Below, piece after piece: positions 5,338 through 53,636 of a stretch of 64,000 nucleotides of DNA. Source of the DNA: Ginglymostoma cirratum (Eukaryota); contig JAHRHZ010000061.1 in NCBI GenBank assembly GCA_024137785.1, positions 1,948,066-2,012,065 of the forward strand. The letters run 5' to 3'. Position numbers and translations under genes: made by a program. Positions within the stretch are counted from its first letter, which is position 1; each line of letters starts with the position of its first letter. The notes beneath the pieces are model-generated. The model searched no databases. It worked only from the letters and a program-made list of their open reading frames with translations, and was not told where the DNA came from.

Positions 5338-8030
5338 CTACTTCTGTTGCAGGCAGGGCATTCCACGCCCTACTACTCTCTGAGTAAAGAATCTACCTCT
5401 GACATCTGTCCGATATCTATCACCCCTCAATTTAAAGTTATGTCCCCTCTTGCTAGCCATCACCATCCGAGGAAAAAGGCTCTCACTGTCCACCCTATCT
5501 AATCCTCTGATCATCTTGTATGTCTCTATTAAGTCACCTCTTAACCTTCTTCTCTCTAACGAAAACAGCCTCAAGTCCCTTAGCCTTTCCTCATAAGACT
5601 TTCCCTCCATACCAGGCAACATCCTGGTAAATCTCCTCTGCACCCTTTCCAATGCTTCCACATCCTTCCTATAATGCGGTGACCAGAACTATACACAATA
5701 CTCCCAAGTGCGGCCACACTAGAGTTTTGTGTAGCTGCAACATGACCTCATGGTTCCGAAACTCAATCCCTCTACCAATAAAACCTAACACACCGTACGC
5801 CTTCTTAACAACCCTATCAACCTGGGTGACAACTTTCAGGGATCGATGCACAAGGACACTGAGATCTCTCTGCTCATCCACACTACCAAGAATCTTACCA
5901 GTACTCTGTATTCCTGTTACTCCTTCCAAAGTGAATCATCTTACACTTTACCGCATTAAACTCCATTTGCCACCTCTCAGCCCAGCTCTGCAGCTTATCT
6001 ATGTCCCTCTGTAACCTGCAACATCCTTCCGCACTATCCACAACTCCACCGACTTCAGTGTCATCCGCAAATTTACTAACCCATCCTTCTACGCCTTCAT
6101 CCAGGTCATTTATAAAAATGACAAACAGCAGTGGCCCCAAAACAGATCCTTGCGGTACACCACTAGTAACTGAACTTCAGGATGAACATTTCCCATCAAC
6201 CATCACCCTCTGTCTTCTTACAGCAAGCCAATTTCTGATCCAAACTGCTAAATCACCCTCAATCCCATGCATCCGTATTTTCTGCAATAGCCTACCGTGG
6301 GGAACCTTATCAAATACTTTACTAAAATCCATTTCCACCACATCAACTGCTTTACCCGTATCCACCTGTTTGGTCACCTTCTCAAAGAACTCTAAAGTTT
6401 GTGAGGCACGACCTACCCTTCAAAAAACAGTGTTGACTATCCCTAATCAAATTATTCCTTTCTAGATGATTATAAATCTTATCTCTTATAATCCTTTCCA
6501 ATACTTTACCCACAACTGAAGTAAGGCTCACTGGTCCAATATTATCAGGGTTGTCTCCACTCCGCTTCTTGAACAAGGGGACAACGTTTGCTATCCTCCA
6601 GTCTTCTGGCACTATTCCTGTCGACAATGACGGCATAAAGATCAAAGCCAAAAGCCTCTGCAATCTCCTCCCTAGCTTCCCAGAGAATCCTAGGATAAAT
6701 CCCATCCGGCCCAGGGGACTTATCTATTTTCACACTTTCCAGAATTGCTAACACCTCCTCCTTATGAACCTCAATCCTGTCTAGTCTAACAGCCTGTATC
6801 TCAGTATTCTCCTCGACAACATTGTCTTTTTCCTGTGTGAATACTGACGAAAAATATTCATTTAGCACCTCTCCTATCTCTTCAGACTCCAAGCACAACT
6901 TCCCACTACTGTCCTTGATTGCCCTAATTTTACTCTAGGTGTTCTTTTATTCCTGACATACCGATAGAATGGTTTAGGGTTTTCCTTGATCCTACCTGCC
7001 AAAGACTTCTCATGTCCCCTCCTGGCTCTTCTTAGCTCTCTCTTTCGGTCCTTCCTGGCTAACTTGTAACTCTCAAGTGCCCTAACTGAGCCTTCACACC
7101 TCATCTTTACATGAGCCTCCTTCTTCCGCTTGATAAGAGATTCAACTTCTTTAGTAAACCACGGTTCCCTCGCTCGACCACTTCCTCCCTGCCTGACAGA
7201 TACATACTTATCAAGGACGCACAGTAGCTGTTCCTTGAACAAGCTCCACATTTCAATTGTACCCAGCCCCTGCAGTTTCCTTCCCCTTCCTATGCATCCT
7301 AAATCTTGCCTGATCGCCTCATAATTGCCTTTCCCCCAGCTATAACTCTTGCCCTGCGGTGTATACCTATCCCTTTCCATCGCTAAATTAAACGTAACTG
7401 AATTGTGGTCACTATCAGCAAAGTGCTCAACTACCTCCAAATCTAACACCTGGCCTGGTTCATTACCCAGTACCAAATCAAATGTGGCCTCGCCTCTTGT
7501 TGGCCTATCTACATACTGTGTCAGGAAACCCTCCTCCACACATTGGACAAAAACTGACCCATCTAAAGTACTCAAACTATAGTGTTTCCAGTCAATATTT
7601 GGAAAGTTAAAGTCCCCCATAACAACAACCCTGTTACTTTCGCTCCTATCCAGAATCAGCTTTGCAATCCTTTCGGCTACATCTCTGGAACTTTTCGGAG
7701 GCCTACAGAAAACTCCCAACAGGGTGACCTCTCCTTTCCTGTTTCTAACCTCAGCCCATACTACCTCAGTAGACGAGTCCTCATCAAACGTCCTTTCTGC
7801 CACCGTAATACTGTCCTTGACTAACAATGCCACACCTCCCCGTCTTTTACCACCTTCCCTGAACTTACTGAAACATCTAAACCCTGGAACCTGCAACAAC
7901 CATTCCTGTCCCTGCTCTATCCATGTCTCCAAAATGGCCACAACATCAAAGTCCCAGGTACCAACCCATGCTGCAAGTTCACCCACCTTATTCCGGATGC
8001 TCCTGGCATTGAAGTAGACTCACGTCAAAC
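5338..8030 (-). pseudogene. CR1 ORF2 (AP endonuclease plus reverse transcriptase), frameshifted
   Basis: Split among ORFs 6874..7986, 6545..6898, 6382..6705, 6177..6377, 5895..6140, 5669..5929 and 5338..5661. Confidence 0.92.
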
Positions 8031-17640: not shown

Positions 17641-19507
17641 ATATTCATTAACAATTACAACTTGAGCCATTAAATTAACAACACATAGCAGTATCACAAA
17701 TAATAATTAGTCAAAAACAAGTGGAGTTAATGATATATACCTTACTACATAATTGGAATAGCGACAACAGTGAAAACTGTAAACAAATCATAAATTGTCT
17801 GAATGGTTGCGCCAGACAAAAGAATGGTTTTCTGCAGGCAGCAAGAAAGGAAAACGTGACATAGTGACTGGCTGAATATTAGGTGAGTTTTGGTTTTATA
17901 ATAGAGGGTTAAAATGTTTAGGTTATGTCAGTGGCATCCATGAGACATATAGGTCCTCAGGCAATCCTCTCGTTGCGTTGTATGTGGAATACATTCGCCA
18001 GTTATGAATATTCATTAGTGTGAATATTTTATAAAGATCTCTAAGATAAATTTAGCGGTACAGAACAAAAACTTGTGGCATTTGTGTAGCTTGTAGTACT
18101 TTGATTATGGAAAATGGAAGGAGTTGAAACTAATCATCAGTTCTATGGCTTAAATCTATGAACACAAATGTTCTTATCTCGCCGCCTGCTCTCTGTGCAA
18201 ATGCAGAAATAATTATGGGTCTCATTCAGCAATACACTTACAGCCTCAGAGGAGTGAATGCAACAAAGAAGGACCCTTGCCACCAAGAAAAGTAGCTTTT
18301 GCAACACCAGCCTCAGGCAGCACTAAAGGGAAAAATTGTTGAGGATTTAGCAATCCAGGAAGGCATTATTGAAGATAGGCACTGGCGTTTGGCAATAAAG
18401 TTATGTTCATGATGCAAAGCTGCATTATTTGGTCCTGGAGATCTTTTCTCACCTACCAGTAATTGCAGTGTTGGCAGCTAATGTAAGGTTTCACCAATGT
18501 AAAGCTTCTGCTGCTGTGGATTTGTATGTGTTTCCTTTATATGTTGCTAGTGCTTAGATTTTTAGTTAGAATTGCATGAGAAACAGGAAAGAGCAAAAGA
18601 ATGCAAGTGGCACGGATGCCACGGTTAAAATTATGCCCATTATTTCCTGGCAATGCAGATGATGCAAATTGTGCACTCAAATTTCATACTTCTCCGTTCT
18701 AGCCATAGCCCACTCCGTTTAACTGAGGTTTAGTTGAACATTATGGTCTGTATTTGTCTGACATTCATACAGTGCATTCTTACTGTTTTCTCTTCAAAAG
18801 TTTGTTTTTAAAATATGGGGCATGATTCATTTTGCGCCAGCTTTAACATGTTTTTTTTTAAGTAATCGGTTGAAATTGCCAGAAAGTTCTTTCTCATTAT
18901 CATCTTAGCTGTATTCTGAACCAGCTGATCATTCAATGCTGTTATTGCTGCAGATGGATAAGTCCCAGGGGATGAAGGCTACCCTTTGCTGGGAGAAGAT
19001 GAATGCTTGACTGGGGTAATAATAAGTTGATATAGTAAAGGATAATTTACTTTAGCTTTAAACTGTATTATAATTTCAAAAGAGACTATATGCCTTTAAT
19101 TAGATTATGCTCTGTGCTGTGTAGAATATCACGGTGTGATGCTCCAAACAGAATAAAAGTACACTAATAAGAAATTAGTAATGAATAACTTACGACGACA
19201 GAACCTTACAAACAACATAGTCATGAAAAAGTTCAGCTTAAGAAACATAAGCAAACATTTTAAGGTCTCTGATATGATCAGAATTAGGAAAATATTCATT
19301 CCAAACAGATGCATGTTAAACTGTGCAACACATTGGATATACTACCTCAATTTTTGCCTTGCATACCTCCTCAAAGCTTATATGACACAATGCACAAAGT
19401 GGTCCCAAATGTAGGCCAGAGCCCAGCTCCAATACAGTAATAAGACAAACAACAATATCAAATTATGAAATGACTGCTTCCTTTTCATAACATTGCCACC
19501 ATTTCAT

Positions 19508-19513
19508 TTTATT
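19508..19513 (-). promoter_or_regulatory. AATAAA polyadenylation signal overlapping the stop codon
   Basis: Minus strand reads ACA TTT TAA TAA AAT, which contains AATAAA; whether it is used is unknown. Confidence 0.3.
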
Positions 19514-19660
19514 AAAATGTATTTTCATATATTCTCAAAGGAAAGTGACGAATAAAGCTATAATTTGAATTTCGATTAAAATCCTGACTTGATATGGGAG
19601 TCTCTTGAGTTCTTGATGTAGTGCCAACATTAACGTAGATCTGATTGTCTTCAGGTTCTG
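19512..19660 (-). CDS. Terminal exon: cytoplasmic tail with tyrosine motifs
   Basis: Acceptor tctttcttgttag; EPEDNQIYVNVGTTSRTQETPISSQDFNRNSNYSFIRHFPLRIYENTF*. Confidence 0.82.
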
Positions 19661-22600
19661 CTAACAAGAAAGAGACATACAAAAAGATGTAATTTGTTTT
19701 GTTTAGTTCGTGTTGTGATATGAATACACTTAAAGCACTGACAGCAACAGACAAACCTGTATCAGTTCTCTAAATGAATGCTGGAAAACCCATGCCAAAA
19801 TGTCACTTTTATTAGTTTAAACTATTACAGGAAGTTTCTTTCTGTTCATGAGACTCTTATTTTATGGCATTGCTAGCATGACTATCATTCAGCTTCAGTC
19901 ATTTGAGAAACTCCTCAGCTCAGGCATCAAGAACAGCTCTTTAAACTCAACTTCAAATTTTAGCTGCCTGCCAATTTATTACTTGAAAAAGTAATTATCT
20001 CTTCCTTTCACTAAGGACTATAAATATAAAACTACTCACAAATGAATACTCTCCGATTTATGATCGATTGACTACTGCCAGGAAACACAAGTCATTACTG
20101 TTGCTTATTTACATGTGGATGCAGAATACAGTCTCTCAGAGCTTTATACTCTTGTGATGTTTGCTGTTTCCTGTTTGATATTGGGAAGGTTCGGTGGACT
20201 TAGTAAAAAGGCAAATTGTGCATGGTTTATGGAAGGGATATCTGAATAGATGAATGAGTCCATTTGTTTCTTCACTTCTTATTACCTTACTGCTTTTCTT
20301 CCTGTCGGGTGCTAACTTCTCGCTTGCTTCTCTATAACAATGTGTCAACCACAGATTAAATGCTCTGTGAGTGAATAAATTTGCACTGAACTCTGAGTTT
20401 AATTGTCTAAATCACATATATACTTTTAATGCACACAGGACAGTTGAGAAAGATAGACAACTTTACACGTGAACAAATTGTATTTATATTGATAATGTAT
20501 AAACTAATTACAGTTCTGGGTTATGTTTCTACATAGTCAGAGACAGTTTAAACAAATAATTAATGACACAAAGTCATTGACCTGAAGTGTTAACTCTGTT
20601 TATCTCTTTCCTGGTCTGATGAACATTTCCATCATTTTCTGCTTTTATTTAATGTAAACGGTTACTGGAATTACAAGAGGTTTATTTCCGTAGAGTACAA
20701 TTCTCCATTTTGGCTCCCAAACTTAAATTATTACCTCATACTTCACCGTACCCACTGTGTATCAGACCCACTAACAACCAACAATACGTTCACTTATACA
20801 GGTATGCTGCTGTTAATATAACAAAATGTATCAAGATGCTTGACAGGAATGTTATGAAATAAAATTGAACACAAACTTACACAACATGATGGGAAGCAGA
20901 GTGCTAGAAATTTGATCAGAAAGGTAATTTTAAGGAATGTCTTGACGGAGGAAAGAAAGCTAGAAAGATATAGAGTTTCAGGAGGAAATTCCAGAGGTCA
21001 GGGCCTGGACCACTGTAAGAATGGCCACCACTGAATTTGAAAAAAAGCAGCTTTGTGAATTTAAGAAAAGTGAAGCCAACATCAATGTTGTAGCATAGGA
21101 CGTGCAGAATAAATCAGTCTCTATGCTGCTTCTGTCTTAAACAATCTCACAGAGTACCCCACAATGCCCTCTTGTGACCTTCCCCAATTCCTATAATATC
21201 CTTCTTTGTCGACTCTGTGAATGCCTAAGGCCAACATTGTATTCAGCGGCCATATCCAGTTGTAACTGCTTTGATATGGTGGGTTTCAAATATGAAAAGA
21301 CAGCGTTCTAGATAAGTACAGCCAGCTATCAGTTATACAAGTCAAACAGTTGTACAGAGTGGGTGTAAAATTCATTCATCTCCTGCATACATCCACATAC
21401 TGGAACACAGATTAAGTCTGAAAAATTGTGCAAACAGTAATACTGCATTTATTTCCACAACCTAACTTTCTTGGTTTATAATCAAGGATTCAAATTTCCT
21501 GGATCTTACCTTTTTTTGAGCGCTTTAATAGAAAATAGACAACTGCAGCTATGAGAATTGGACCCAGAGAAGACAACACCCACCATAAATACTCTCTAAC
21601 TGTGAAAAAAATAAGAAAGCCTATGAAGTCTTTGTCATCAGCAGATCATCTGATAACCCACATAATTAAATACTCCCAAGATCAAATAAATGTTACCGTT
21701 CATGATATTTTTGGACTAAGTACACAGAAATATCTGTGAATGTGCAAAGTATAAAGTGAGCACAGGGTCACCAAGTATCAAGCAAGATTTCAGAAATACT
21801 CCAACGTAAGCCGTTAATACATTGTTAATTAACTTCTGAATAACAAAATACTGGGTGAATATTTGGTTTGGAACAAGGCTAGGTATCACTGTTATTTAAT
21901 AGTTGCTTATTGCTGTCCTACAACACTGGAAGTTAGTTCAAGGCGAGATAAAGCAGGGCCGAGAGTAAATAGCAGTTTACGGGGAGATAATTGTGAAGAG
22001 TATGATTCGGTGTAGCAGATAAGGCCTACACCTTCTTTGTGGGACCAGGGAATCCTTTTCACTTGTCACACCAGTTATTAGTTCTTGGGTCAGGTCCTGC
22101 GTGTCCCTCTGACCACTGCCACAAGGTACTACTGCCCACTCCAACTCCCCACAACCACAGAATACCTCACCCCTGCTCCCTGCAGCCTCAGATCCCCGCC
22201 ATTCCCTGCACTGACTTCCATTTTAACATTAACATTAGGTGCTGTTAATTAATGCAACTGAACCTTAACTACCAACGAGGTATGAGGTGTTAACCTATGC
22301 TATGGAATAAGAAATTATTCATCTCCATTTTAACTAGAGTTAGTTACGATTCCCAATTGGTTTCTTAATACTTTCTTTGATTGCGTATACATATAATTCC
22401 TGCAAATAAACCAGCTGGTAGGTTTAGCCAGAGCAATCAGACAGTACGAAGCAGTTTCATTTCAATAAATTACAATTTCTGTGCTTTTCATTTTCAAAGT
22501 CAGTCAATCAACAAGAGTTCTGAGAAATCAGGTCTACTTATCGAATCTGCAATTTTCTTTCAATTCAAATAAGAGTGGAAATAGAATGAATCCTAAAACT

Positions 22601-25163
22601 CCTGGACTATTCCATTTTCTCATTACAAAAAAGGACGGAAAGATTTTAAAGTGAAGACCGTAAGAGAACTTTAAAATTGAAATACCTTCCTGTTGTTCAT
22701 CAAATGGTATGGTGAGTTTCCTAATGAGAGGGATTTGCAACATCGACTGATTCACATGACATGAATATACATCCCCTGCCTTCCAATGGGAGAGGTTGAC
22801 ATAACTTGTTGCAGAATTGTTATCATTTGAGGTAATAATAGGTCCAGAGTCAATCCATACTGAGCCTTCTTTTCTTTCTCTTCTCCACCTCAATTGTACA
22901 TCACCAGGATAGAGGTTCTCTGCTTTACAAACCAGTTGTACACAAGAGCAATTTTCAGGCTGAGGAAGAAATGTAACTTCAACCACTGGAGGAACTTGAG
23001 AAAAAAGATAAAAAAGAGAGTTGTGAATTGCAGACTCTTAGAAGCCCTACCATGTGGAAGCAGGCCATTTGGTCCATCAAGCCCATACTGACCCCGGTGA
23101 AGATCATCCCAACCAAACCCATTCCCCTACCCTATCCCTGTGACCCTACATTTCATTTCCCACAGCTAATCCATCTATCTGACACATCCCTGGACATTAT
23201 GGGCAACTTAGCACGTCCAATCCACCTAACCTGCAGATTTTTACATAATTTTGGAAAATAAACTACTTCATTTTCAATTAATTTTTTTAAAAAATTAATT
23301 TCTATATTGTGGATGGCTATGATGGCTGTGATGTTGTTCCCGCAACTTAATACTGTACATTAATACATTAAACAGGCAAATATTTAGGTTATGATGTTGT
23401 TAATAACATTTAGAATTTTTTTTACAAATACATTTACAATTCATTCCAACTTGTGACCAGCAGAAGTAATTAGATGAAAATACAACATATATATGTGATT
23501 AATGCAATAACAATTATACCCATACATTTTTATATGATACACACATACATAACAAAATAACTCGTACCTGCTACTATGAGGCTTGTTTTGTTTCCTTCTA
23601 TTTCTATAGTAGGTGGTGGTATATGAAATGCAATCTTACAATAATATAGATCTGAATCATTCATTTGGAGATCTTGGATGATAAACTGAGTAACGCTGGC
23701 ATTGAGCTTCAAAATGATGCTCGTTCGATCATCACAGAGAGGATTCGGTATCAGCTTCTTATTTATATAAGTTATACTACATACAGGATTTTCGACTTGT
23801 TTACTCCTCCACCAGGAAACATGCATCATTTCAGCCTTCTTACGAAGGTACCAGTTGGAAAAAGTGATGTTAACACTTTCGCCCTTGAGTGCTCGGAGAA
23901 CAGCTGGAGTTTGGAAAACTTGGTCTTCACAATATATTACAACTGTTCCGAAGAAAAATCAAACTGAATTAGCATCATTAATTAAAAACTAATCAAAATT
24001 ATCTCTGAGAATTTGCACACCTATTTGAAGACATAGGACTTTAATAGATTGAAATAAGATCCTTTACTGAGGAAAACATTACATGAATTCAGCAGATCAA
24101 CATTTGCAGGGTGCATTATTTTTCTTTTGAATCAAAATTCGTCTGTAGGCAAGAATGCAGTTAAGGTATGAAATCCCAATGAATAGCACAACGAATCAAG
24201 AATCTCTTATGCAAAGACATGTCACTGTTTAATGTTATAATGCACATTTATGACAGGGAGATGTTTATATATTCATTTCAAAGAGCAAGATGTTTGTAAT
24301 GTCAATGATCTTTGTCGCAAGAGTTTATAATGTCATTGTTTGGTTCAACAAGAATTTGGCCTTGTCTCTTCTCAATTTAAATTAGGAAGCTTGAGAATGG
24401 TAGAATTGAGATTGCTGCCCCAAACTGACCGAATAGGGTGTTTCTCATTCCAACAATAACCGTTGTAAAGAACTTGCACAGTACTGTTCAATTGCCAACA
24501 TCAGAGAATCTTGTTGATCAGTGCATAGCTCTTACTGTCTTGGATAGCTTACTTAAAGATAAAACAAAATTGTAATGACATATTGCCTACACAGAAGAGT
24601 TTTAAACAAGTTTAATGTCTGCATAAGGATAAAAGTGTCTGCTTAAAAAGCACTGCTCACTTACTACCATGCTCACCATGGAGATATATTCACAATACCG
24701 CTAATGCAGTGAGGTTTAGGATGAAAGTTTTGATTTTGATTACATTTGGTTAAATTTGTATGAAAATGTCATAGGCAGTGGGGAAAGTGGAATTCTAAAA
24801 TTAATACCATTGCACACACCTCAACAAATTGCTTCTGACATTTCAAACACTTCTTTTTTCAAAATCAATACAGATTCCCATCTAAATAATCTAGTTTCCT
24901 GTGAATGAAGACAGGTCAACATTTGGTGCTACCGTGTACAATATTTAGGCCGGCTGAATGTTTGACAAAAGAATTCCTGCAAAGGAGCCTTAATACAAGA
25001 AATTCAAAGATCAAAAAGTGACAATCAATATCAGCAGATACTTTAAAATGTTAGGTAGACTGTTCTTTCAGATTTGCTAGCTTTATCAGCACAAAGAAGC
25101 ATTCTTACCCAAACTAATCATGAGGAGAATCCACTTAGCGAAACAGTTATCAACTGAAGACAT
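19512..25163 (-). CDS. Spliced IgSF type I membrane receptor (leader-V-C1-TM-cytoplasmic), CD28/CTLA-4/CD28H-like V domain; about 325 aa; join(25163-25109,23942-23568,22994-22686,21599-21510,19660-19512)
   Basis: Five exons with GT-AG sites, all junctions phase 1, 55+375+309+90+149=978 nt with no internal stop. Protein: MSSVDNCFAKWILLMISLVVIYC-EDQVFQTP...DSDLYYCKIAFHIPPPTIEIEGNKTSLIVA-VPPVVEV...LVCKAENLYPGDVQLRW...YSCHVNQ...-VREYLWWVLSSLGPILIAAVVYFLLKRSKK-AEPEDNQIYVNV...IYENTF*. An extra small cytoplasmic exon cannot be excluded. Confidence 0.85.
20790..21030 (-). mobile_element. Old L2-type LINE 3' fragment in the intron after the TM exon
   Basis: Similar to 38590-38790 and 40600-40930. Confidence 0.5.
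21510..21599 (-). CDS. Exon 4: transmembrane segment
   Basis: Acceptor tttttttcacag, donor AAG|gtaaga; 90 nt; YLWWVLSSLGPILIAAVVYFLL followed by basic stop-transfer KRSKK. Confidence 0.9.
22686..22994 (-). CDS. Exon 3: Ig C1-set domain
   Basis: Long polypyrimidine acceptor, donor AAG|gtattt; 309 nt; LVCKAENLYPGDVQLRW and WKAGDVYSCHVN match C1-set motifs (LxCxxxxFYPxxIxxxW; YxCxVxH). Confidence 0.92.
23035..23237 (-). mobile_element. Partial HE1-type SINE (3' half) in the V-C1 intron
   Basis: gtggaagcaggccatt...gggcaacttagcacgtccaatccacctaacctgca. Confidence 0.8.
23568..23942 (-). CDS. Exon 2: Ig V-set domain
   Basis: Acceptor ttttcttcggaacag, donor CAG|gtacga; 375 nt; VFQTP A strand, GESVNIT B strand, VSWWR C strand, IQDLQMNDSDLYYC, GNKTSLIV G strand. 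Confidence 0.93.
25109..25163 (-). CDS. Exon 1: signal peptide MSSVDNCFAKWILLMISL
   Basis: ATG with A at -3 (gcaaaATG), hydrophobic core, phase-1 donor G|gtaaga; joins in frame to VVIYC-EDQ of the V exon. Confidence 0.8.
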
Positions 25164-25199
25164 TTTGCTCAGCACATGTAGAATCGAAAAGTTGAGAAC

Positions 25200-25500
25200 T
25201 AGTTCTGGTATGATAGGTGGGTGTGTGCAACCAACCTTCTGCTAAAAAAGTAAAGTAGATTGCTGCGGGTTTGTACATCAGCCTTCCTGTCTGGATTGAC
25301 CTTATGATGTTTATTTTTAAATGCACCTCAACAATGAAATAACTTCTTAAAAAGAATCAGTGAAAATCATGTCTAAGTGTGACAATTTATTATTTGTTTC
25401 TGCTATAGCCAGCCGATCTTGTGTACTTTGCATTAGTTTTCCCGGCATCTCACGTATACAACCAAACCTATTTCATTTCAGTATTTCAGAATAACTGGGT
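25200..25500 (-). promoter_or_regulatory. Probable proximal promoter of the IgSF gene
   Basis: Unique sequence directly upstream of the ATG; ETS-like CAGGAAG (25289-25283) and GAAA-repeat IRF-like run (about 25469-25489) on the minus strand. Confidence 0.35.
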
Positions 25501-32059: not shown

Positions 32060-34628
32060 GGCAATGGCCTAGTGGTATTATTGCTAGACTATTAATCCAG
32101 AAACCCAGCTGATGTTCTGGGGACCTGGGTTCAAATCCCACCACGGCAGATGGTGGAATTGGAATTCCAAAAAAAAAGTCTGGAATTAAGAACCTACTGA
32201 TCACCGTGAAATCATTGCCGATTGTCAGAAAAACCCATCTGGTTCACTAATGACCTTCAGGGAGGAAATCTGCCACCCTCATCTGGTCAGGCCTACATGT
32301 GAGTCCAGACCCACAGCAATGTGGTTGACTCTCAACTGACCTCTAAAATGGCACTCAGCAAGCTACTCAGTTGTCCCAATCGCTACAAATGAAACCGGAC
32401 GGATCACCTGGCATTGACCTAGGCACCAGAAAATACAAAGGCAGACCCGCAAAGTCCTCCTCACCAACATCTGGAGGTTAGTGCCAAAGTCAGGAGAGCT
32501 GTCTCACAGACCAGTTAAGCAACAGCCTGACATAGTCATACTCACAGAACCATACCTTACAAACAATGTCCCAGACACCACCATCACCATCCCTGGATAT
32601 GTCCTATCTCACCGGCAGGACAGACCCAGCAGGGGTGGCGGCACAATGGTATACAGTCGGGAGGGTGTTGCCCTGGGAGTCCTCAACATTGACTGCGGAC
32701 CCCATGAAATTTCATGGCTTCAAGTTAAACATGGGCAAGGAAACCTCCTGCTGATTACCACATACTGTCCTCCCTCAGCTGACGAATCAATACTCCTCAA
32801 TTTTGAACAACACTTGGAGGAAGCACGAAGGATGGCAAGGGCACAAAATGTACTCAGGGTGGGGGATTTCAATGTCCACCACCAAGAGTGGCTCGGCAGC
32901 AGTACTACTGATCAAGCAGGTCGGGTCCTAAAGGACATAGCTGCTAGACTGGGCCTGCGGCAGGTGGTGAGGGAACCAACAAGAGGGAAAAACATACTCG
33001 ACCTCATCCTCACTAATCTCCTAGCTGCAGTTGCATCTGTCCATGACAAAATCAGTAAGAGTGACCATCGCACAGTCCTTGCGGAGACGAAGTCCCGCCT
33101 TCACATTGAGAACAACCTCCATCATGTTGTGTGGCACTATCACCGTGCTAAATGGGACAGACTTCACACAGATCTAGCAACTCCAGACTGGGCATCCATG
33201 AGGCACTGTGGGCCATCAACAGCAGCAGAGCTGTACTCCAGCACAATCTGTAACCTCATGGCCCGGCATATCCCCTGCTCAACCATTACCATCAAGCCAG
33301 GGGATCAATCCTGGTTCAATGAAGAGTGCAGGAGGGCATGCCAGGAGCAGCACCATCCATACCTGAAGATGAGGTATCAACCTGGTGAAGCCACCAAACA
33401 GGACTACTTGCATGCCAAACAGTGAAAGCAGCAAGTGATGGACAGAGCTAAGCAATCCCACAACCAATAGATCAGAGCTAAGCTCTGCAGTCCTGCCACA
33501 TCCAGTGGTGAATGGTGGTGGACAATTAAACAACTCACTGGAGGAGGAGGCTCCACAAATAACCCCATCCTTAATGATGGAAGAGCCCAGAGCATCAGTG
33601 CAAAAGATAAAGCTGAAGCATTCGCAGCAATCTTCAGCCAGAAGTGCCGAGTGAATGATCTCGGCCTCCTGCAGTGGTCCCCAGCATTATAGGTATCACT
33701 CATCAGCCAATTCGATTCACTCCACGTGATATCAAGAAACGGTTGGAGACACTGGATACTGCAAAGGCTACGGGCCCTGACATCATTCCAGCAATAGTAC
33801 TGAAGAATTGTGCTCCAGAACTTGCCGTTCCCTGGCCAAGCTGTTCCAGTACAGTTACAGCACTGGTATCTACCCGACAATGTGGAAAATTGCCCAAGTA
33901 TATCTGGTACATAAAAAGCAGGACAAATCCAACCCGGCCAATTACCACCCCATCAGTCTCCTCTCAATCATCAGTAAAGTGATGGAGGGTGTCATCAACA
34001 GTGCTATCAAGCAGTGCTTGCTCAGAAATAACCTGCTCAGTGATGCCCAGTTTGGGTTCCGCCAGGGTCACTCAGCTCCTGATCTCACTACAGCCTTGGT
34101 TCAAACATGGACGAAAAAGCAGAATTCCAGAGGTGAGGTGAGAGTGACAGCCCCAACAACACTCAAGAAGCTTGACACCATCCAGGACAAAGCAGCCCAC
34201 TTGATTGGCACTCAATCCACAAGCATTCACTCCCTCCACCACTGAAGCTCAGTAGCAGCAGTGTATACTATCTACATGATGCACTGCAGAAATTCACCAA
34301 AGATCCTCAGACAGCACCTTCCAAACCCACGGCCACTTCCAACTAGAAGGACAAGGGCATCAGACATATGGGAACACCACCACCTCCAAGTTCCTTTCCA
34401 AGTCACTCACCATCCTGACTTGGAAATATACCGCCGTTCCTTCTCTGTCGCTGGGTCAAAATCCTGGAATTCCCTCCCTAATAGCATTGTGGGTCAAGCC
34501 ATAGCAGGAGGACTGCAGCAGTTCCAGAGGCAGCTCACCACCACCTTCTCAAGGGCAACTAGGGATGAGCAAGAAATGCTGGCCAGCCAGCGACGCCCAC
34601 ATCCCATGAAATGAATAGAAAAAAAAAC
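32060..34628 (+). mobile_element. Single-ORF LINE (APE-RT) with tRNA-like 5' head, internal RT deletion and A-rich tail
   Basis: A box TGGCCTAGTGG 32065-32075, B box GGTTCAAATCC 32128-32138; APE ORF 32481..33425 (GDFNVH, LDLILTN, SDHR); RT start NYHPISLLS/QFGFR; RT core missing at about 34150. Confidence 0.85.
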
Positions 34629-51899: not shown

Positions 51900-52322
51900 G
51901 TAAAGTAAAAAAAAACTGCAGATGCTACACCCAAGGTAGGCAAACAGGAGGCTGGAAGAACACAGGAGGCCAGGCAGCATCTGGAGGAAAGGAGCAGTCA
52001 ATGTGTCGGGTATTACCCTTCTTCAGGACTGCTTCAAAGGAAGTGGCACCGGACTGGAAAGGCCCAGCGCTGGAAGAGGTCTGCACGTGTATAACAGCAA
52101 TGGTAGTGTGGGGGACTTGGAGGTGACTGGAAACAGGGTGTGGATCTTGAGTAGAGAGTGGGTTCTCTGATTGGAGGTGAGTAGAGGAGAGTCTTGCAAA
52201 CTTAACGATCTTTAATGTCTGATATGAAGCAGTCCTGAAGAAGGGTAATACCTGAAATGTTGACTTTTTCTTTCCTCCAGATGCTGCCTGGCTTGCTGTG
52301 TTCTTCCAGCCTCCCATTTGTC
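51900..52322. mobile_element. Non-autonomous Penelope-derived element with inverted arms, 14-bp TSD
   Basis: Arms at about 51940-52036 and 52225-52322 are inverted; TSD tatcccaactctta at 51886-51899 and 52323-52336. Confidence 0.85.
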
Positions 52323-53636
52323 TATCCCAACTCTTATACTTAAAGGTCTGAGCAATGAAAGCAATCATGCTAAATGCCTTCTTAACCACCCTAAATATAT
52401 GTGATGCAAACTTCAAAGAATTATCTAGCTGAACACCTAGGTTTCTCTGTTCTACTACACTACCCATGGCCTTACCATTAATTATATAAGTCCTGCCTTT
52501 GTTTGTTTTATCAAAATGCAATACCTCGCATTTATCCAAATTAAACTCCATCTGCCACTCTTCAGCCCACTGATACAATTGATCAAAACCTCTTCGTAAT
52601 CTTGGATAACCTTCTTCACTGTCCACAATATCTCTCACAAAATCACAATGATTTTGGTGTCATCTGCAAACTTATTAACCATGTCTTCTACATTCCCATC
52701 TAAATCACTTATCCAAATGACAAACAAACATGTTTCCAGCACCAATGCCTGTGGAACAAGCCTGCAGTCCAGAAAACAACCCTCTACCATCACTTTCTGT
52801 CTCCTGCTGTGAAGCCAATTTTGTGTCCAATTGGCAAGCTCACACTGAATCCCATGTGATCTAATTTTATGAATTAGTCTACCATGCGAAACTTTGTCAA
52901 AGGCTTTACCAAAGTCCAAGTAACCAATGTCTACCGTTCTGCCTTCATAGATCTTCTTGGTTACTTCCTTAAAAAACTCAATCAAGTTTGTGAGGCACAA
53001 TTTTCCTTACACAAAACCATGTTGACTATCACTAAATATTCCTTGCCTCTCCAAATGCGTATAAATCTTAACTTTTGAATCAATTCCAACAACTTACCCA
53101 CCACCAAAGTCAGGTTCACAGGTCTATTGTTACCGGGATTCTCCTTACATCCCTTCTTAAACAAAGGCACAACATTAATCACTCTCCAGTCATCCAGCAC
53201 TTCACCTGTAGTTATTTCTGTCAGGGGCCCAGCAATTTCCACCCTACTTCCCAGAAAATCCTAGGATACACTAGATCAGGTCCCAGGTATTTATCCACTG
53301 TTATATTTTCTAAGGCCTCCAGCACTTTCTCTTCTGTCACATGAACTATTTTCAAAACATCAATATTTATTTCCCTGGGTTCTCTAGACTCCATTTCTAT
53401 TTCCACAGTAGAAGCTGATGCAAAATATTCATTTAATCTCTCTCCCATCTCCTTAGGTTCAACACAAAGACAACCCCTTTGATTTTTAACGGGCCCTACT
53501 CTTTTTCTCATTGCTCTCTTGCTCTTAATGTATTTGTCGAATCTTTTTGGATTATCCTCACCTTTGCTTGCAGAGGCTATCTCATATCTTTGTCATCCTG
53601 CACTCTTAAGAATGCTCCTGCACTCTTTATGCTGTT

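Follow-up and report, generated by a model that had tools for sequence, protein, structure and literature searches.

A predicted receptor of cartilaginous fish that joins a CD28-family-like V domain to an immunoglobulin-type C1 domain

The question

What is a V domain reminiscent of CD28 and CTLA-4 doing in front of a C1 domain? The question is posed by a gene on the minus strand of a 64,000-nucleotide stretch of the genome of the shark Ginglymostoma cirratum (GenBank assembly GCA_024137785.1, contig JAHRHZ010000061.1, positions 1,948,066 to 2,012,065). This whole stretch is called the window here, and positions are given in its own numbering. The gene occupies 19512-25163. A first-pass annotation, made from the letters alone, had read it as a CD28/CTLA-4-type V domain joined to a C1-set domain in a non-rearranging receptor.

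The CD28 family has recently been surveyed. It has nine members, each with a single V domain (Quiniou et al. 2024, PMC11599192), which agrees with what the annotation had said of the characterised receptors. The wider family in that survey includes CD28H, CD28HL1-3, CD28X, ICOS and PD-1. A V-C1 form is not listed there, and the origin of the family is not traced (PMC11599192). Since all members described so far have a single V domain, the addition of a C1 domain departs from the family as it is described.

Our answer, to which we assign a probability of roughly 70%, is that the product of the gene is a type I membrane glycoprotein made of a signal peptide, a CD28-family-like V domain, a C1 domain, a transmembrane (TM) segment and a cytoplasmic tail of about 50 residues, and that it belongs to a family which has no name yet. 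We call the orthologue set of the gene family A; a second set of V-C1 proteins, known from databases as 'kappa-like', is called family B. We found no publication that describes the family; the relevant literature consists of the CD28 survey, the papers on UrIg and UrIg2 and a paper on the shark major histocompatibility complex (MHC). What appears to be new, by computation alone, is a conserved chondrichthyan lineage in which a CD28-family-like V domain is joined to a C1 domain of the immunoglobulin (Ig) type and followed by a tail with YxN motifs in family A, or with motifs resembling the immunoreceptor tyrosine-based inhibitory motif (ITIM) in family B.

The gene and its orthologues

Sequence reading, frame translations and a script concur in an intact gene of five exons for leader, V, C1, TM and tail (Table 1). 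All four introns are of the GT-AG type and all four are in phase 1, which is the usual pattern of Ig-superfamily genes. The exons, the introns and the Pfam matches to V-set and C1-set bear out the intact leader-V-C1-TM-tail gene of the annotation. Its view of a non-rearranging receptor also holds, as a single exon takes in the V domain, G strand included, and runs up to the splice donor. The length had to be corrected: the acceptor AG 19659-19658 is the one used in a transcript-type contig, which sets the start of the tail exon at 19657 and yields a predicted product of 324 instead of 325 amino acids. An alternative NAG acceptor 3 nt upstream (tail exon start 19660) gives the form of 325 residues; Chiloscyllium has both acceptor forms, as NCBI isoforms X1 and X2. 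A pseudogene or a chance reading frame is ruled out by the intactness of the gene, its conservation and the transcript contigs.

The exons were searched separately, and two orthologue proteins stood in for all full-length work. With the V exon as query, HMMER was run over 1.84 billion representative proteins and produced 27 matches at E values up to 1e-3. The top match is a 326-residue 'uncharacterized protein LOC122555561' of the bamboo shark Chiloscyllium plagiosum (E 3e-62, 82% identity); the V exon shares 90% of its residues with the whale-shark protein and 86% with that of the zebra shark. Family A has elasmobranch models in Rhincodon, Stegostoma, C. plagiosum, C. punctatum, Carcharodon, Heterodontus, Scyliorhinus canicula, S. 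torazame and Heptranchias, and a chimaera model in Callorhinchus (A0A4W3K8J4, 49% identical over C1). All these gene models are public, yet uncharacterised or misnamed.

Conservation extends over the entire protein. The leader matches the whale-shark and bamboo-shark orthologues in 15 of 18 residues, and 28 of the 29 residues of the TM exon are the same in the whale shark. The great white shark shares 75 of 124 residues of V, 69 of 102 of C1, 17 of 29 of TM and 31 of 47 of the tail. The C1-set exon is present in all orthologues of family A. In other sharks G or S replaces the Cys of VVIYC|EDQ, which stands immediately ahead of the conserved EDQ. To judge from the alignment, the signal peptide most likely ends with this residue, at its predicted cleavage site.

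A V domain resembling those of the wider CD28 family

The V exon scores 40.4 bits with Pfam V-set (E 3.8e-10, above the curated cut-off). Among the solved structures of the PDB, the best phmmer match is CD28 (E 1.7e-4), followed by a CTLA-4 chain (2.7e-4, residues 9-122 aligned); antibody light chains come after them at 2e-3 and weaker. The ranking of phmmer scores runs from family B (46-63 bits) via single-V members of the CD28 family (33-40) and the solved CD28 and CTLA-4 (24-25) down to the V domain of Ig light chains (VL; 21). The first single-V proteins met outside the V-C1 family are a 'CD28-like' protein of the paddlefish (1.9e-5) and a 'CTLA4-like' one of the great white shark (1e-4). 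The V domain thus resembles the CD28 family, if modestly.

The names of these last two deserve a remark. The 'CD28-like' models of paddlefish and sturgeon bear the hallmarks of CD28X (YxC-x6-PPP-x4-GxG and a YEDM tail), and the 'CTLA4-like' models of the great white shark, together with relatives in basking shark and catshark, those of CD28HL1 (EIPPP and Y[E/Q]SFDYF). Their public names therefore disagree with the nomenclature of 2024 (PMC11599192).

The motifs tell a similar story. The FG loop, YYC-KIAFHI-PPP, has the spacing YxC-x6-PPP and complies with the P-[P/L/A]-P rule of the CD28 family; its prolines are aligned with those of CD28 and CTLA-4. In the family alignment P109 is invariant, P110 and P111 nearly so. 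[IV]PPPT is found in every elasmobranch orthologue, together with GN[KA]T or GDTT; the chimaera has IPQPV and GNST. The phmmer alignment with CTLA-4 pairs vCsitY with vCagtY, ckiafhiPPP with the PPP segment of CTLA-4 and GNkT with GNgT. The CTLA-4 motif alignment of the annotation accordingly survives in its PPP loop, its C'-strand Cys and its NxT sequon; it fails in the second extra Cys, which lies three positions off.

Two other points correct the earlier reading. The canonical V disulfide is one: the B strand, ESVNITFSNWY, has no canonical Cys, which means that the B-F intradomain disulfide is absent and the cysteine of YYC is unpaired. This is no accident of one genome, as the B-strand Cys is absent, with F, Y or S in its place, in all seven orthologue models of family A that cover the strand (those of Heptranchias and Callorhinchus are truncated and lack it). 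In Scyliorhinus canicula the F-strand Cys is gone too, so that both canonical cysteines of the V domain are lost. The other is the G strand, which reads G-N-K-T(-S-L-I-V) and not GxG, the second Gly being replaced.

An AlphaFold model of the V exon, built on the family alignment, is nevertheless confident despite the missing B-strand Cys (predicted local distance difference test, pLDDT, 82), and a Foldseek search with it returns CTLA-4 as top match (8.6e-9, 26-28% identity). As far as a predicted fold can tell, this agrees with the affinity to CTLA-4 without discriminating CD28-family from other V domains; a protein atlas does not separate them either.

Judged by sequence, the V domain may be called CD28-family-like; the narrower label CD28/CTLA-4-type is not supported. 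The closest solved structures are indeed CD28 and CTLA-4, as the annotation would have it, but motifs and nearest sequences fit the wider family, being CD28X-like and CD28H/CD28HL1-like.

C1 domain, transmembrane segment and tail

The C1 exon reaches 39 bits with Pfam C1-set (PF07654, cut-off 21; E 1e-9) and shows the core LVC...LRW...YSCHVNQ, i.e., the Cys-Trp-Cys pattern plus an F strand of the YxCxVxH type. Its PDB matches are Ig constant domains, UrIg2 (9dmx, E 1e-11) and the beta chain of MHC class II; phmmer gives 24 bits to the best single Ig domain in the PDB. All members of family A have a CC or CxC just before the B strand (QLVC) of C1, and the conserved extra cysteines leave the ectodomain with an odd number of Cys.

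The tail contains IYVNV, NYSF and IYENTF, the first and the last being YxNx motifs. [IL]YVN[VF], SNYSFI[RH]H and IY[EQ]N[TA][FL] are kept in six of seven elasmobranch genera, namely Rhincodon, Stegostoma, Chiloscyllium, Carcharodon, Heterodontus and Scyliorhinus, which comprise orectolobiform, lamniform, carcharhiniform and heterodontiform sharks; in Heptranchias the motifs are degenerate. The YxNx consensus is YMNM in CD28 and Y-[EGVTA]-N-[VIMT] in CD28H (PMC11599192). IYVNV fits the latter and the YxNx half of the former, and by sequence IYVNV and IYENTF both conform to the tail pattern of the CD28 family. By analogy, the two YxN sites suggest GRB2/GADS signalling as in CD28 and CD28H. In Scyliorhinus canicula the tail is expanded by about four tandem copies of a unit of some 17 residues (NRNLGQNQGAASTRQH...) between YVNV and NYSF.

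In the full-length model of an orthologue, two beta-sandwich domains are followed by a TM helix and then by a disordered tail. Its best Foldseek matches are T-cell receptor (TCR) beta and gamma chains, Ig light chains, butyrophilins and B7-H6. These matches of a predicted structure reflect the generic V-C1 plan.

To sum the likenesses, the gene shares with CD28 and CTLA-4 a V-set domain with a YxC-x6-PPP FG loop, the type I topology and a short tail with YxN, and with CTLA-4 also the extra C'-D pair of cysteines and an NxT sequon at the place of GNGT. It differs from the CD28 family by its membrane-proximal C1 domain, the missing B-strand Cys, GNK for GxG, the lack of a YxxxxT motif in TM and of a stalk Cys. 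Also, the FG loop reads HIPPPT instead of MYPPPY or EIPPP.

Family B and a common V-C1 ancestor

Behind the bamboo-shark protein, the V-exon scan ranks seven V-C1 proteins (1e-12 to 2e-7) that come from sharks, rays and Callorhinchus and have automatically been named 'immunoglobulin kappa light chain-like' or 'Ig lambda-like chain'. They form family B, of which Callorhinchus NP_001279395 and Carcharodon XP_041066805 are examples. With the C1 exon, too, it is the C1 domain of family B that scores highest in phmmer (34-48 bits). As family B is nearest for V and C1 alike, a single V-C1 ancestor is indicated, not two independent domain fusions; the sequences thus argue for a descent of both families from one V-C1 ancestor.

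Family B has the same leader-V-C1-TM-tail plan as the window gene, an extra Cys pair in V, isoforms that skip the TM exon and a C1 motif YSCxVNHSxLxxP in common with it. Unlike the window gene, it has preserved the canonical Cys and a J-like GxGTxLxV, reads EIPPP and has no CC or CxC in C1. Its FG loop fits the CD28H/CD28HL pattern YxC[polar]xxxEIPPP, whereas the window gene has HIPPP. The tails also differ: that of family B ends in IYxLLGQ, which resembles an ITIM or an immunoreceptor tyrosine-based switch motif (ITSM), where the window gene has its YxN motifs. With its loss of the canonical B-strand Cys and of the second Gly of GxG, both of which are retained in family B, family A is, by these sequence characters, derived and not primitive.

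The family A and family B models are assigned to contigs of the same length in Carcharodon (118,536,060 bases) and likewise in Stegostoma (82,076,947 bases), and probably the two families share a chromosome in each of these species.

A maximum-likelihood tree was built from 54 V domains, the mammalian references of CD28, CTLA-4, ICOS, PD-1 and CD28H not being included. Family A forms a clade with support 100/99, Callorhinchus included, and family B one with 97/94. In approximately unbiased tests, neither the monophyly of A plus B (p 0.29) nor a grouping of A plus B with CD28X-like and CD28HL1-like sequences (p 0.094) is rejected.

A model of the axolotl, Ambystoma mexicanum XP_069483859 (488 aa), comprises two tandem V-C1 units, V with PPP and GN[EG]T, before one TM segment. 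It is either a four-domain receptor or a fusion of two neighbouring genes; in terms of sequence, it suggests that V-C1 genes of the PPP type occur in amphibians too.

The automatic names given to members of families A and B are misleading. They include 'HLA class II DM beta chain-like', 'class I histocompatibility antigen Gogo-A*0201 alpha chain-like', 'tyrosine-protein phosphatase non-receptor type substrate 1-like', 'immunoglobulin kappa light chain-like', 'Ig lambda-like' and 'SIRP-like'. The public names of the V-C1 genes are wrong and need correction.

Transcripts and splice forms

Four runs under the same species label were mapped to 19400-25300; that they contain RNA is partly a guess. 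From one run guessed to be RNA, a contig of 222 nt (depth 5.3) joins 22686 directly to 19657. The skipped stretch is bounded by CT..AC on the plus strand, i.e., by GT..AG on the strand of the gene. The donor of C1 and the acceptor of the tail are thereby confirmed, and the TM exon of 90 nt is left out; the exon being symmetric, the frame is preserved. A contig of 209 nt from a second, probably RNA, run covers 22787-22995, the C1 exon. Had transcripts always skipped the C1 exon, the annotation would have had to be withdrawn; this is not what is seen, as C1 is present in transcript contigs. In poly-A RNA a few raw reads fall on the V exon (23734-23930). Their first mates all map to the plus strand, the orientation that a standard stranded library should give for a minus-strand gene.

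Skipping of the TM exon is not confined to this species. NCBI has a form without precisely this exon for the bamboo shark (isoform X3, 297 aa) and another for the family B gene of Callorhinchus (isoform X2). Such skipping looks like a family trait, and the product is probably a soluble protein.

How the receptor may work

What we infer about ligand, signalling, dimerisation and expressing cell type is of another order than the structure, the domains, the orthology, the nearest relatives and the single TM-skipped contig reported above. By analogy to the pairs CD28/CTLA-4-B7 and CD28H-B7H7, the V domain would bind a cell-surface ligand via the face that bears the PPP of the FG loop. The C1 domain might serve as a rigid spacer that raises V from the membrane and, with its conserved extra CC or CxC, possibly as a dimerisation module. 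Upon ligand engagement, the tyrosines of IYVNV and IYENTF could become phosphorylated and recruit SH2 adaptors of the GRB2/GADS type, as their counterparts in the CD28 family do. Docking of adaptors to YxN would, on the same precedent, mean a positive signal of the costimulatory type. CTLA-4 also exists as a soluble isoform that arises by skipping of the TM exon. Similarly, the secreted V-C1 form may act as a decoy or soluble competitor.

Weighing the alternatives

A number of observations weigh against a CD28-family-like membrane receptor. The similarity to CD28 and CTLA-4 is modest (E around 2e-4), and the match to CD28 is limited to the E-F-G part. Foldseek places PD-1 and V domains of Fab fragments almost level with CTLA-4. 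The deep V tree offers no firm attachment for family A, which stands beside chondrostean CD28X-like sequences with support of 80/63. The single-V ectodomain of the CD28 family is not found: the C1 exon sits between the V and TM exons and is present in transcripts. The GxG bulge is missing in the window gene and in family A; this bulge occurs in CTLA-4, CD28X and chondrichthyan members and is not universal in the CD28 family (PMC11599192). The TM segment, REYLWWVLSSLGPILIAAVVYFLLKRSKK, has no YxxxxT, since no Thr stands at +5 from either Tyr, and the stalk between C1 and TM contains no Cys. Finally, the evidence of expression is thin, consisting of 12 reads and two short contigs from runs in part guessed to be RNA. 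None of the 12 reads mapped covers the V-to-C1 junction or the TM exon, and the sole junction seen skips the TM exon, which means that the membrane form is not directly shown here.

Some of these observations could be accommodated by a receptor that is antigen-receptor-like, or of the SIRP/NITR/UrIg type, with germline VJ-C1 structure; the PPP loop and the CTLA-4-like cysteines would then be convergent. The full-length orthologue model indeed finds its best matches in TCR beta and gamma and Ig light chains, the C1 matches are Ig constant domains and UrIg2, and for the V exon Ig VL ranks only 3-4 bits below CD28 and CTLA-4. Public pipelines call members 'Ig kappa light chain-like', 'Ig lambda-like' or 'SIRP-like', and the deep V tree is without resolution. 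Yet the first matches outside the V-C1 family, among 1.84 billion proteins, are single-V members of the CD28 family and not Ig, TCR or SIRP, and YxC-x6-PPP, NxT at the position of GxG and the YxN tail match signatures of the CD28 family (PMC11599192). A SIRP-like protein of the coelacanth attains 16 bits with C1 and is not among the V-exon matches listed, which go down to 21 bits; nor is UrIg2 among the V-exon matches. We consider this alternative unlikely.

UrIg and UrIg2 merit a closer comparison. They are non-rearranging VJ-C1 genes of elasmobranchs (PMC12227049), and with them already published, a non-rearranging VJ-C1 architecture in sharks is not unprecedented. Like the window gene, they have a germline-joined V exon followed by C1-type domains. 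They differ in having three to eleven C domains and an Ig/TCR-like V without the motifs described above, whereas the window gene has CD28-family motifs in V, a single C1 domain and a signalling tail. The latter unites V and a J-like G strand in one exon, with G-N-K-T-S-L-I-V as compared to the consensus GxGTxLxV. UrIg2 does not occur among the PDB matches of the V exon, and a specific sequence affinity of the V exon to V domains of UrIg2 or SIRP was not seen.

SIRP and the B7/butyrophilin proteins resemble the window gene in being single-pass membrane proteins with an ectodomain of V plus a C1-type domain, and they appear among the Foldseek matches. SIRP differs by its low score, that of the coelacanth protein with C1, and by its absence from the listed V-exon matches; B7 proteins occur in none of the sequence matches. 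Membership in SIRP, NITR or B7 is ruled out on sequence scores. PRARP, a gene with a V domain only that has been placed with NKp30 among VJ-domain genes, was set aside as a rival.

Is the protein mainly a secreted one? The TM-less form could be the functional one, acting as decoy or in an opsonin-like manner, and the membrane form a minor product. The sole junction recovered, which joins C1 to the tail with TM skipped in frame, would fit, as would the modelled TM-less isoforms of the bamboo shark and of the Callorhinchus family B gene; with UrIg, secretion of a non-rearranging VJ-C1 protein is known from sharks (PMC12227049). However, the gene retains an intact TM exon with consensus splice sites, which is all but identical in the whale shark, the conserved cytoplasmic tyrosine motifs make sense only in a membrane form, and a single contig at depth 5 is no measure of an isoform ratio. 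A mainly secreted protein is, therefore, quite improbable.

That the gene encodes a ligand of the B7/butyrophilin type (V-C-TM) and not a receptor is scarcely credible: the two-domain model does have B7-H6 and butyrophilin chains among its best matches in Foldseek and the B7 family shares the plan of V plus C in its ectodomain, but the V-exon sequence searches contain no B7-family protein, the J-like G strand and the PPP-bearing FG loop are receptor-side features, and the tail has conserved tyrosine docking motifs.

A CD28-family-like membrane receptor thus remains our preferred interpretation. If real, it extends the architecture of the CD28 family beyond the single V domain, and the two families would offer shark immunology candidates for paired activating and inhibitory receptors. 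They would also be a gene set with which a VJ-C1 ancestor common to costimulatory receptors and antigen-receptor chains can be tested, which should be of interest to comparative immunologists. One might go further and regard the V-C1 genes as surviving descendants of the ancestral form of the CD28 family, a germline VJ-C1 gene from which the single-V receptors arose by loss of C1. We hold this improbable. If true, however, costimulatory receptors and the chains of antigen receptors would go back to one VJ-C1 ancestor, still open to inspection in cartilaginous fish. The annotation's own extensions, a bridge between costimulatory and antigen receptors, an architecture of pre-RAG ancestors and a possible binding of B7 proteins, are conjectures that go beyond the present results.

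Exons and neighbourhood of the gene

The five exons are compiled in Table 1.

Table 1. Exons of the V-C1 receptor gene, in the order of transcription, with positions in the window.
Exon	Positions	Strand	Content
Leader	25163-25109	-	ATG at 25163; MSSVDNCFAKWILLMISL plus 1 nt; phase-1 donor GT 25108-25107
V-set	23942-23568	-	124 codons; extra Cys pair PVC...PLC; YYC; FG loop HIPPPT; G strand EGNKTSLIV
C1-set	22994-22686	-	102 codons; LVCKAENLYPGDVQLRW...YSCHVNQS; extra CxC (ENCSCVQ) just before strand B
TM	21599-21510	-	90 nt, phase 1 to 1; REYLWWVLSSLGPILIAAVVYFLLKRSKK
Cytoplasmic tail	19657-19512	-	PEDNQIYVNVGTTSRTQETPISSQDFNRNSNYSFIRHFPLRIYENTF; stop TAA 19514-19512

On the strand of the gene, an AATAAA hexamer at 19508-19514 overlaps the stop codon (TTT TAA TAA AAT). 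If used, it would leave an extremely short 3' untranslated region; the transcript contig stops short of the site.

A second set of Ig-type exons was not found in the 64-kb window by tblastn, by a hidden Markov model built from the family or by a scan for the Cys-Trp-Cys pattern, and no other host genes were recognised there. The gene is flanked on both strands by open reading frames of long interspersed nuclear elements (LINEs) or other retrotransposons, which look like fragments of endonucleases and reverse transcriptases (6874-7986, 32481-33425, 51925-53511 and many more). One of them has a counterpart in Stegostoma tigrinum: the first 170 or so residues of LOC125457215 (479 aa) resemble the LINE reading frame at 53221-53511 of the window (MESREPREINIDVLKIVHVTEE...). 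To judge from this resemblance, that model is probably a fusion of an upstream transposon fragment with the receptor gene.

The intron between V and C1 harbours a short repeat at 23052-23213, which in the probably-RNA sets reaches a summed word depth of 264-352, with single contigs up to 850. Most copies have 23073 T>C and 23082 C>T. The flanks vary between contigs, and the repeat therefore looks like an abundantly transcribed element similar to a short interspersed nuclear element.

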